A DNA stretch of 64,000 nucleotides from Ascidiella aspersa (Eukaryota), in assembly GCA_963924565.1 (NCBI GenBank), contig OZ004615.1, positions 7,874,001 through 7,938,000 on the forward strand. The letters are read 5' to 3'. A model generated the notes under the pieces. That model did not search any database. It had not been told where the DNA came from and saw nothing but the letters and a program-made list of their open reading frames with translations. Position numbers and translations under genes: made by a program. Below, one piece after another: positions 1,133-22,039 of this stretch. Position 1 is the first letter of the stretch; each line of letters opens with the position of its first letter.

Positions 1133-1315
1133 CGTGACGTTTTCACTTGATATGTCGATCTCTTCACCATTGCGCATCCACTTGACCTTTGTGTCTGGAT
1201 CGGTGACCTTGCACGTTAAGGTGACGTCATGATCACCTTCGTCACAGTGCAAGTTGTTGTCCAGGTTGGCATCGTCGGCAAAATGGGTCTTAGGCGGGGC
1301 GGGCGGCCCGTCTAT
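1133..1315 (-). CDS. Extension exon, Ig N-half (gene continues past window start)
   Basis: VTLTCKVTDPDTKVKWMRNGEEID; ACG|gtaaga. Confidence 0.86.
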
Positions 1316-4300
1316 CTATAAAATTATATTAAGTTATTAATTTTGCTTTTTATATAATTTGTACTATTAAAGAAATACAAATAGATTTGACAAACTTTAC
1401 TAATAAAAACATACAAATAGAATTGACAAAGTCTGTCACTTTTTGAAGCTCTGGGCTACAATATTTTTTTTTAAACAACTATTACATTTGATAATAAATT
1501 GCAAAGCCAAAAAGTCAAGTAGATTGACAGCATCTTGATTAAGACGTTTCGATACGAGCTTGTATATTACATTTGCATTGCATAAAAAGGCCTAAAACTA
1601 CTTAAATGTGATGAGCAAAGGCAAAACAAAAGCGTTACCTCTTGGGCGCCGAGTTCCAATTTAAGTTCGCTTGATGTCTTTTGTTTATCCACAGTGCATT
1701 GGATCGATCCTGCGTCTTCTGCACAAACGTTTCTTATTGTGAGATGGATTTCGTCGCCGTGTTGCTTGATCTTGTACCTTTACAAAAAAACGTTCCAGTT
1801 GTATATGGGCAATTGGACATCTATTAAAATGTAACACTTATGTATGTTTTAATTATTATTAAGTAATTTAATAGAGATTTTTTTTGAATTGTTTGAAAAC
1901 CAAAGTGTAATTTCACCACCATTGATCTATCAGTCAGAGTTTATTTGGTTATGTTTGGTCAAGGTAGTTTTGCATTATTCTCAAACTACAATTGTCTACT
2001 AGCGCAACACAGGATTTTATATTTCAAGTAAAACCTATATGCCTGCTACCTATATGCCTGCTACAAGCAGCAATTATATTATCTTTTAGACGCACCTTGT
2101 TTATACTATACCAAAAAGCTCAGTATACTAAAGTAGATAAATCGAATATATTTCAAAGATTAGCTAATATATACAACTTATACCCAAAACCATTACCTAA
2201 AAGTACTAATACGACTATGTAATTCTTCGTTAGAGCCACTTATACAGGGGATGAAAGCTACTAATATACGGCCTGGGCTCCGAATAGCGACTGTTAGAAA
2301 GGCGACCGTCAGGGGAGCGGGTTCACGACAGCAATTCACTTGCACAATGTGCGCAAAAACGTACAAAAAATGTGCGGGCATTTTAAAATGCCTTAAAAAT
2401 GTGCGCACTTTTTTTCCAGAAAGTTTGTACATTTTTAAATGAAAACGATTCTAACTCCAACTTTAACACTAACTCAAAATTGAGTATATCTCGTTCTGAC
2501 CCACCAGTAAAGTCGCTATCGTAACAGTTTCTGTTTTAACGCTGTGGCCATTTATACAGTCCCTCTATTGACAGTTAATTGAACCATAGTAAAATTTTAC
2601 TAAGTGTGATAACCGACGCCTTACAAGTAAATGCTAAATCCGCACCGCGAAACCCCAGGGATAACCCATCTCCAGAGCACTTATTTTGACTGTGAAGGCA
2701 CTTCTTCTCTCCATAACCTTTCTCTGAACCCATCCTGACTTAGAATCCCCTAAAACTCACTTATTCTCTCTTCCTGTCAGGACATCCCTGTAAACAACTC
2801 ATTTTTCCTTTCGTAAAACTCACTTCTTGCTTTTAGGAGGAACCGGGATACCACAATGTGTCCACGTCGATCTGCACTTCCCATCGGATGAGAGCTTCAC
2901 CACGAAGACGACGTCCTCACCGAGCAAGGCCGACGTCACTTCCGGGAGGTCGGAGCTGATCTTCTGGAAAGGCTCGATCTCGAACCAGCTGAGGACCGTG
3001 AGCTTGCAGGAGCAGGCAGTCTGCGGCTCACCTGCGTAAAAAGCAGTGTTGTAAACAAGTCATTTTATAACGACTTAAATCCCAGACATTTTAAAATAAC
3101 TTAAGACCAAGTCAAGTCTTTCTAAATAAATACCACGTCAAGTCTCAGTAAGGTCTTAATAAGATGATGTCAACTTCAAGTCAAGTCCTTGCCATAAAAA
3201 TAAAACGCTTCACTAATAAAATTGGTAAACTCGTCCGATTATGACCAATATCTTCACAAAAAAATAAAAAAACGCAACATCAAGTGAAATGAGTTATGTA
3301 TGACAAAAATTATGATAAATAGCTCAATTGGATAAAAAATGCTTAAACAAAACACCTCATTTCAACCCAAGTCATAGGCACAAAAGGCTAAAGTCAAGCC
3401 GAGTTTTTTGTCTAAAAGACTAATGTTACATTAAGTCATTTTGCCCATAATAAGTCTATTCAGGTCTTAAATAATCATTGTGACTCAAGTAATTACACCA
3501 CTGATAAAAACTAAACAATATTATTGGTTGTTTTGCATTTACTTGTACCGTGTATCTAAACCTCAACGCGACACAATACTCTCCAGTAGTGAATTTAAAA
3601 AAAAATATGCAGGCACTTACGTTTTTATAGTATTTGGTTCATGCTTAGACATTGCTGATGACCGATGAAACTACGGAGTAGACTTACAATAAAACGGTTG
3701 CGAAAGTTTGCCTACTTCAACAGTTTGTTATGAAACAAAATCTGGTTTCGTATTTTAGGAAGGTATGAACAGAATTGTTTGTGCTTGTTTTAACCAATCG
3801 TAGTTTAGAGAACCTCAACCTGGTTGAGTTTACTTTCCTTTTCTAACCAGACAAGAACATTGCCACAAATAGCGTTGAAAAAGTAACAGATTGGGTTGAA
3901 AATGAGCAAACAAACTAAAAAAAATACGAAATTTGTGGGTCCGACACCACAGCGCATTTCATACAAGCTCTATCTGTGGGTCACCTTAATAAAGCTTTAT
4001 TATATTTTCCCAAAGCAATCGACAAAGTACGGCTACAAATGACAGGTAATAGTAGTGCAGAATATGTAACAATGCTAAAATATTTTGTCATATCTATTAA
4101 ACATTTGTTGCAATTTAAAGTTGCGACTGTTTTTGACGTTGAAACGGCAGTGATGGAACTGTATGGCTCCAAAACGTTAGCAGCTTAACTTTATATGCAT
4201 AGACAAGACAATATACCGTAACTTCTTTTTGGTTATTTAGTTGTCGCCGAACGGTATACCAGTTAAAATATGTATTAAATTTTTCTAACTTGGTTACTAT

Positions 4301-21300: not shown

Positions 21301-21891
21301 GCCAGCCAAACAATTTGCACAGAACGGTAAAGTTAGAAAGGTTTATCGAAATCAACTGTATAAATTGAATTGTTCCTAAACTAAAAATTCATCGAACTGT
21401 GAGCCTAAGAGATATGTAATGGCTTAACACTCCAGATTTTGGTCATACTTCATTTGAAGTGACGACATTGTAAATTTCCGTAACCCATGCAGCTAATTGG
21501 TAATAACAAAAAAACAAAATGGAATTTCCCTTATGGGGTTTATATTAGAAATAATGTGGCAACGTGCGCTTAATAAAACCTACGGTTTTCGTGGCCGAGG
21601 TTTGAATGATGATCAGTGAGGTAAATGTAACGTCGAATAACTAATACCATTCTTAATATGGCGCTTTATACTGACATACAACGCCATCGGTTATATAAAG
21701 GCCTTAAGTAAAGGAAATAGTCTTTAAAACTGCTTTTGTTTTGAGAAAACGTGGTTTTACGGATGAAGCTTAGTGAAGAACAAACAAACAGGAAACAGCA
21801 AACGGCAAACGCAGTCATCATCAAAAACGGGTGCAAGTGTATGTGCGGTGGTTCGTGCAAACGTGTGACGTCAGACACTGTTGTTGTCACG

Positions 21892-22039
21892 TCATACACC
21901 TGGCGAAATGACGATCAGTTCGGCGCTGTGTTCGGCGGCGCCCTCGGTGTTCATAGCTTTGCAGGTGTACTCGGCGTCGTCACTAGGTGACGCATCGGAG
22001 ATGAGCAACGTGCATATGTCGTCCTCGTTGTAGGAAATT
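21892..22039 (-). CDS. MYLK: Composite terminal exon: telokin Ig C-half ending ISPGV*; internal donor after 21900
   Basis: [15 protein letters not shown]...[11 protein letters not shown]...AELIV; CCAG|GTGTATGA. Confidence 0.92.

Follow-up and report, generated by a model that had tools for sequence, protein, structure and literature searches.

Giant kinases built of Ig and FN3 domains, such as Drosophila Stretchin-Mlck, titin and twitchin, are produced in short and long forms through alternative promoters and poly(A) sites. According to the text of one recent study, MYLK, OBSCN, TTN and TRIO/KALRN lay on one ancestral chordate chromosome, and the kinase genes of the titin family are argued there to have arisen through duplications within a single chromosome; that MYLK and obscurin are neighbours is not reported in that text, figures and supplements aside (PMC12198301). 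The present analysis concerns a stretch of 64,000 nucleotides from the ascidian Ascidiella aspersa (GenBank assembly GCA_963924565.1, contig OZ004615.1, positions 7,874,001 to 7,938,000; hereafter the window), in which a gene aligning as MYLK and encoding MLCK is followed head-to-tail, within ~1 kb, by a predicted obscurin-type gene, the junction between them being open and in phase. The locus is not a new kind of system. It probably comprises two adjacent minus-strand genes: a MYLK gene whose product ends in PGV, and next to it an obscurin-type gene that starts from its own short first exon. An earlier sequence-only reading had inferred that a choice between splicing and polyadenylation yields either ordinary MLCK or a giant protein in which the MLCK sequence is extended by the downstream exons.

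Alignment with relatives identifies the upstream gene in the window as the 3' two-thirds of an ascidian MYLK ortholog, closest to Phallusia among the records compared. Residues 948-2630 of a Phallusia MLCK model (P0155; 2,630 residues) are collinear with the window from 63693 down to 21895 in tblastn searches. The MLCK-type Ser/Thr kinase domain (P0155 residues 2204-2437) maps to 30486-26450 in five exons at 83-95% identity, and the segment that follows it (residues 2437-2528), which we take to be autoinhibitory and calmodulin-binding, maps to 25846-25721 (83% identity) and 24182-24015 (66%). The penultimate coding exon, at 22775-22935 on the minus strand, encodes the first half of the telokin Ig domain; it is bounded by an acceptor at 22937-36 and a donor GT at 22774-73, aligns to P0155 residues ~2530-2582 and is contained in part in an RNA contig. 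The last coding exon, at 21892-22039 on the same strand, encodes the second half of the telokin Ig. It begins at 22039 after the acceptor AG at 22041-40, is covered by RNA reads and ends ISP-G-V-stop, with Gly at 21900-21898, Val at 21897-95 and the stop codon TGA at 21894-92; identity with P0155 residues 2582-2630 over 22041-21895 is 75.5%. A single C-terminal telokin Ig after which the protein ends was thus found in the sequence, in RNA that reads through into the 3' untranslated region (UTR), and in the models of relatives. Elsewhere in the MLCK gene, an open exon of 1,099 codons was observed at 41106-37810, which is skipped in the aligned Phallusia, Ciona and Clavelina MLCK models.

The MLCK 3' end was examined in four sequencing runs from this species (runs X1 to X4), compared over 16900-22899. 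Runs X1 and X2 are DNA, with contigs collinear over 17678-22311. Run X4 is stranded RNA-seq, of which ~6/100 was sampled, with 252 reads placed, mostly on two repeats; run X3, whose kind is unrecorded, behaves as RNA and was used as contigs only (Logan). Depth in X4 was 0.65-4.07 in all 14 bins of 19300-22099, with four reads still over 19408, and 0 in all seven bins of 17900-19299 as well as in bin 16900-17099; first mates fell on the plus strand only, which fits RNA from the minus strand. One X3 contig of 2,681 nt (record 21) covers 19654-22039 and passes directly to 22775-22899, indicating that the telokin intron had been removed and that the GT at 21899 was read through. A second X3 contig (record 20) covers 19447-19660, making the two records collinear over 19447-22039, and X3 depth was 0 over 17900-19299. 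Two AATAAA poly(A) signals lie on the minus strand at 19502-19507 and 19368-19373, the latter followed by zero depth below 19300. Taken together, the RNA depth and the two signals indicate an MLCK 3'UTR of ~2.45-2.55 kb (19350-21891, minus strand, its end being approximate) that finishes near 19.35-19.45 kb, the X3 contig ending at 19447 and X4 reads still reaching 19408. A poly(A) site between 19.3 and 21.8 kb, which the sequence-only reading had proposed to look for, was therefore found, and it falls within the would-be intron, RNA depth ending between 19300 and 19450.

The GT in question (CCAG/GTGTAT, 21898-21899, minus strand) is a donor-like site of phase 1 that lies 5 nt 5' of the stop codon. 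Its donor score of 2.02 is mid-range among the 22 donors of the predicted downstream exon chain (0.4-5.0 on our own scale). Splicing at this GT was not seen in either RNA data set, and no molecule carrying the junction 21900/18356 was present in X4, at a depth of ~3, or among the X3 contigs sampled. The first two exons of the proposed extension had zero depth in both RNA sets, while MLCK was expressed. Most probably, the GT at 21899 reflects the way in which phase-1 Ig exons ordinarily end, and transcripts normally continue across it.

The C-termini of MLCK models from relatives were compared using records from Ciona intestinalis (XP_002122169.1 and isoforms), Phallusia mammillata (CAB3264137.1), Clavelina lepadiformis (XP_076821517-22) and Ciona savignyi (H2YHI4). 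All nine ascidian models that reach the C-terminus (Ciona intestinalis isoforms X1-X3, Clavelina lepadiformis isoforms X1-X5 and Phallusia mammillata, the longest of 2,712 residues) end in PGV and none is extended. Outside these nine stand P0111 (a Ciona MLCK) and P0158, which are one and three residues short, the fragments P0280 and P0271, which stop far upstream, and the cluster members P0272, P0273, P0281 and P0282. An extended ascidian MLCK was found neither in the best 120 of 1,544 matches (candidates of 994-3,162 residues) nor in the best 120 of 411 matches (1,446-4,602 residues), longer fusions lying outside this range. The C-terminal G-V-stop is common to four ascidian genera. In models named MLCK from three echinoderms, a hemichordate and mouse, the protein likewise stops 3-21 residues past the last Ig strand, 21 in the case of mouse. 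A stop soon after the telokin Ig is, judging from these models, the rule in deuterostomes, so no unspliced intron is needed to explain the stop found here. In three of the models from other deuterostomes, those of a sea urchin, a brittle star and an acorn worm (P0154, P0283 and P0152), a second kinase motif was observed near the N-terminus (positions 134-146), in addition to the usual kinase motif ~370-430 residues before the end; these are either real two-kinase proteins or models fused with an upstream kinase gene.

The downstream exons were assembled by our own crude dynamic programming, with codon log-odds derived from 36 clear-cut Ig/FN3 open stretches in the locus, simple splice scores and a minimum exon length of 45 nt. 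The resulting chain comprises 22 phase-consistent exons from 18356 to 1133 (3,836 nt, ~1,278 codons), runs off the window and encodes seven Ig domains, an FN3 and four or more further Ig domains, in agreement with the extension of more than 1,250 residues that had been described from the sequence. A laxer minimum length gave 24 exons; the two extra ones, micro-exons of 26 nt, were taken as artefacts. Pfam was run exon by exon on 10 of the 22 exons and matched I-set, Ig_3 or ig in seven (E 4e-10 to 6e-3) and fn3 in one (7224-7087, E 3e-6); two exons (searched as 9451-9233 and 7827-7684) gave no match. The chain opens at the acceptor aacctttcag, with AG at 18358-57, which precedes an exon of 447 nt (18356-17910, phase 1 in and out). 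The GT at 21899, of phase 1, fits this acceptor, as had been claimed: at the junction the G of the Gly codon would join TT to give Val, after which come EKRPSSRTNSPLSS and a divergent Ig domain. Phase agreement alone is not strong evidence for such a join, the prior being 1 in 3 and Ig exons of this family being typically phase 1-1.

The identity of the downstream gene was followed in 140 kb of same-strand DNA below the window, where positions are given as negative window coordinates. Ig exons continue to about -24,800, with FN3 at about -21,900 to -22,800, and Ig/FN3-like open stretches extend to -117,800, forming a long I-set array with few FN3 domains. A predicted chain of exons from -29,000 to -41,000 contains an SH3-like exon pair and four exons that weakly match P0095, a protein with RhoGEF at residues 185-356 and PH at 376-480 (Pfam). 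The four matches are collinear, to P0095 residues 214-238, 274-330, 331-383 and 398-422, with BLASTP E values of 0.13, 1e-3, 1e-4 and 6e-3, respectively. Pfam searches with single large open stretches of the SH3-DH-PH region returned nothing except SH3_10 at E 0.069, and the first 560 residues of P0095 gave no tblastn match at E <= 1e-3. Two kinase domains were found further down on the same strand, at -99,572 to -105,769 (kinase 1) and -122,103 to -124,168 (kinase 2). When the MLCK kinase exons of the window were used as tblastn queries, matches were obtained at -99,575 to -104,586 and -122,109 to -122,255 (E 5e-16 to 1e-4); two MLCK-like kinases towards the C-terminus are a feature of obscurin/UNC-89. 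In order, the ~143 kb locus encodes seven Ig domains, FN3, many Ig domains, an SH3-DH-PH-like block, kinase 1, Ig/FN3 domains and kinase 2. On the predicted exon chain, the extension forms the 5' portion of a gene of the obscurin/UNC-89 type. The obscurin/titin-like character assigned to it by the sequence-only reading was thus borne out, in the form of the start of a gene that has two kinases of its own below the window.

A protein search with an exon of kinase 1 gave 12,110 matches at E <= 0.001, of which the best 150 were examined and 19 sequences fetched. The highest identity among these 150 was 76%, to a protein of 353 residues from Styela clava (XP_039262365); aligned one exon at a time, this protein and kinase 1 are 44-77% identical. 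The Ciona MLCK record P0111 also came from this search, and a full-length ascidian obscurin was not among the 19 sequences. In the Styela clava RefSeq set this counterpart of kinase 1 is a separate protein with its own Met. The obscurin-type locus may comprise several transcription units, like OBSL1 and SPEG. A ~20-kb array of tRNA-like repeat units, with the recurrent stretch GGTRTRNLRFRRPTPYPLGH, was observed in an intron of the obscurin-type gene at about -41,000 to -64,500, and Ig exons resume beyond it. Below the gene, an assembly gap of 200 N lies at -131,097 to -130,898.

We infer that the obscurin-type gene is transcribed separately, from a first exon of its own. The MLCK mRNA reads through the GT at 21899, stops after ISPGV and has a 3'UTR that is cleaved and polyadenylated near 19.35-19.45 kb. 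The obscurin-type mRNA would take its AUG from a short upstream exon, the minus-strand stretch 19416-19361 being the strongest candidate for it. The donor of this candidate (CAG/GTGAAT, GT at 19360-59, phase 1) would be spliced to 18356 or to a same-phase acceptor at 18249. The candidate follows a tttcag acceptor (AG 19418-17), and its ATG at 19403-01 lies 13 nt past that acceptor with no other ATG between; the coding part, 19403-19361, is 14 codons and one base long. Among 132 phase-1 stretches from ATG to GT within 25000-18357, it alone is well-donored, apart from a Met in the telokin exon, and within 21890-18357 it is the only such candidate with a donor score of at least 3.0. The score of 3.49 is above those of 17 of the 22 chain donors. 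In 1000 first-order Markov sequences of the same length and composition, 81 contained a candidate whose donor was as good, and 23 of these also an equally good acceptor within 60 nt. The candidate lies 30 nt beyond the X3 contig end at 19447; it could mark where an operon-like pair accepts the spliced leader, or be a first exon served by a promoter in the MLCK 3'UTR. The earlier statement that no convincing alternative first exon exists between the two genes is weakened by this candidate, which as a separate first exon of the obscurin-type gene is itself a lead and not a finding. Direct addition of a spliced leader at 18357 was rejected as the whole answer, as there would then be no in-frame AUG before the second Ig domain.

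Several observations weigh against two separate genes. Exon 18356-17910 has no in-frame Met, as the sequence-only reading had noted, and a stop closes its frame 22 nt 5' of the acceptor, so it cannot be a first coding exon. The obscurin-type exons are silent in both RNA sets and their 5' partner has never been observed; an X4 depth of ~3 would miss a splice present in fewer than about one third of molecules, and rare variants are lost from Logan contigs. With no more than 14 codons, the candidate first exon is short; it has a codon score of -1.6, was picked post hoc, overlaps the second AATAAA signal of MLCK and is not joined to the downstream exons in any RNA read. Searches for relatives of exon 1 among proteins of 82-260 residues gave 21 word candidates, none with E <= 0.001, and a phmmer search of exon 1 against PDB returned 20 matches with E <= 1, of which the best had E 0.033; obscurin was not among them.

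If the telokin exon were a composite terminal exon, the GT at 21899 would in some tissue or stage be spliced to 18356 and a conjoined MLCK-obscurin protein with three kinase domains would result, which is the switch proposed from the sequence and which we regard as unlikely. The join is in frame, the GT falls exactly at the Ig boundary and 5 nt before the stop, its score is mid-range among the real donors of this gene, the acceptor of the Met-less exon 1 is strong, and a poly(A) site lies in the would-be intron between genes that are on the same strand and ~1 kb apart. These features are offset by RNA that reads through the GT, by zero depth over both exon 1 and exon 2 in the two RNA sets, which do express MLCK, by the nine of nine complete ascidian models that end in PGV with no extension, by the early stop of non-ascidian MLCK models and by the existence of a candidate separate first exon. 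The conserved Val-stop cuts both ways: across four ascidian genera it would keep G/GT if Gly is encoded by GGT, and it also forces, through Val (GTN), a T at intron position +4 and the stop at +6 to +8, making a poor donor, which selection for a good one would presumably not favour. The switch is thus unsupported rather than refuted, because the obscurin-type exons are unexpressed in both RNA sets.

An operon-like unit would instead have one precursor made from the MLCK promoter, an MLCK 3' end near 19.45 kb and trans-splicing of a spliced leader at 19418-17, the acceptor that lies 13 nt ahead of the ATG at 19403. Ciona has operons in which the intergenic spacer is nearly absent, the succession of acceptor, short leader, ATG and phase-1 donor suits this arrangement, and the X3 contig ends 30 nt upstream of the acceptor; X4 reads, however, run past the acceptor to at least 19408, and depth over the downstream exons is zero in RNA that contains MLCK transcripts, unlike what a shared promoter would predict. 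We consider such a unit improbable. The same low probability attaches to distant 5' exons, either located in or before MLCK, which would then be nested in the first intron of the obscurin-type gene, or borrowed from the N-terminal phase-1 Ig exons of MLCK with the kinase and telokin skipped. Exon 18356 needs a phase-1 partner, Ig exons of the locus are mostly phase 1, and nesting does occur here, in that a kinase unit lies inside the obscurin-type locus on the same strand; yet nothing points to any such exon, and an intron would have to span an entire expressed gene, over more than 45 kb. More generally, it is doubtful that ascidian MYLK and obscurin still form one transcription unit, whether through a muscle splice of MLCK onto the obscurin scaffold, by way of a weak donor retained at the telokin Ig boundary (G/GT-GTA-TGA, which unspliced would yield the conserved PGV), or through a spliced-leader operon. 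If they do, the unit would be a living intermediate between an ancestral giant kinase gene and vertebrate MYLK and OBSCN, and an MLCK-obscurin transcript, if real, would represent a novel means of anchoring a Ca2+/calmodulin kinase on the sarcomere scaffold. Two adjacent genes, the reading that we prefer, would make this an ordinary annotation result, showing where an ascidian MLCK gene ends and where its obscurin-type neighbour begins. Gene-finding programs are likely to merge the two, because the junction is open and in phase, and some evolutionary interest lies in MYLK standing head-to-tail within ~1 kb of an obscurin-type gene. Literature searches found nothing on ascidian MLCK together with telokin, or on a read-through transcript of obscurin and MLCK.

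The predicted extension exons within the window are all on the minus strand. Exon 1 (17910-18356), the first recognised obscurin-type exon, encodes a Ser-rich segment and the divergent Ig (Pfam Ig_3, E 1.2e-5) and has zero RNA depth. The second Ig domain begins in exon 2 (16810-16987; I-set, E 1.3e-8), continues in the small exon 3 (16358-16417; predicted only) and ends in exon 4 (15462-15660; I-set, E 6.5e-6), in which the third also starts, its second half being encoded by exon 5 (14634-14823; I-set, E 4e-10). Exon 6 (13872-14065; I-set, E 1.7e-9) carries the first half of the fourth Ig and is followed by exon 7 (13188-13281; predicted only), and exon 8 (12229-12523; I-set, E 1.5e-6) carries a linker and the first half of the fifth. 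Exons 9 (11570-11706) and 11 (10302-10423), from the exon chain, flank exon 10 (10846-11026), which encodes the first half of the sixth Ig (ig, Ig_3 and I-set, E 6e-3 to 9e-3). By position, exon 12 (9233-9453; exon chain, no Pfam match) would encode the first half of the seventh Ig; exon 13 (8476-8665) is placed by the chain with an uncertain 5' boundary. Exon 14 (7684-7829; exon chain, alone without a Pfam match) would, again by position, encode the first half of the FN3 domain, the second half of which is in exon 15 (7086-7224; fn3, E 3.3e-6). Exons 16-18 (6703-6568, 5956-5817 and 5017-4899) and 19-22 (4600-4483, 3031-2824, 1777-1639 and 1315-1133) are given by the chain; together, exons 16-22 (1133-6703) encode at least four further Ig domains, and the gene goes on below the window.

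A pure polypyrimidine run of ~75 nt was observed in the Ser-rich start of exon 1. It leads to a tag at 18250-49 that is in the same phase, and the interval from 18349 to 18250 contains no AG. Exon 1 may therefore truly begin after this second acceptor, 108 nt 3' of 18357, the apparent Ser-rich linker then being intron. The acceptors at 18357 and 18250-49 are each phase-compatible with either donor (21899 or 19360).

Scans of 16800-23000 against Rfam (E <= 0.1) and for tRNA gave no matches, and the plus-strand open reading frames were unremarkable. Intronic repeats at 17100-17700 and 22270-22400 reach a summed DNA-run depth of up to ~2e5, compared with 62-103 for unique sequence; they carry RNA reads on both strands, belong to dispersed families and have no Rfam or tRNA match. 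Positions 1-735 of the window are a dispersed repeat with at least 40 copies in the same genome, at 88-95% identity and on several contigs.

Compared with known systems, the locus resembles several in part. Stretchin-Mlck, titin and twitchin would be the precedent for a switch; in these most of the long Ig/FN3 part precedes the kinase, whereas here it would be C-terminal and bring two more kinases, with no RNA support. The secreted/membrane switch of IgM, and conjoined genes, share with this locus a 5' splice site just before the stop and a poly(A) site in the downstream intron. The difference is that the defining junction was not observed here and that what lies downstream belongs to a known gene family and has its own candidate first exon.

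The two genes taken singly each have a close counterpart. Like vertebrate MYLK, the upstream gene and its relatives encode N-terminal Ig domains, FN3, an MLCK-type kinase, a presumed calmodulin-binding segment and a C-terminal Ig after which the protein ends, and mouse and other models are 46-56% identical to the ascidian models over the kinase-telokin part. It differs in ending with PGV 5 residues after the last Ig strand, without the acidic tail of mouse (21 residues), in having its stop 5 nt 3' of a donor-like GT, and in the 1,099-codon open exon, which is absent from the Phallusia model. The downstream gene differs from obscurin in its N-terminal Ig, which is very divergent, has no significant PDB relative and lacks a Met of its own, and its SH3, DH and PH are suggested by weak collinear exon matches (E 0.13 to 1e-4; SH3_10 E 0.069). 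It shares with obscurin (OBSCN)/UNC-89, and with OBSL1 and SPEG taken together, a long I-set array, a single early FN3 and two MLCK-like kinases spaced by Ig/FN3 domains and preceded by a putative SH3-DH-PH-like block, all on one strand over ~143 kb.

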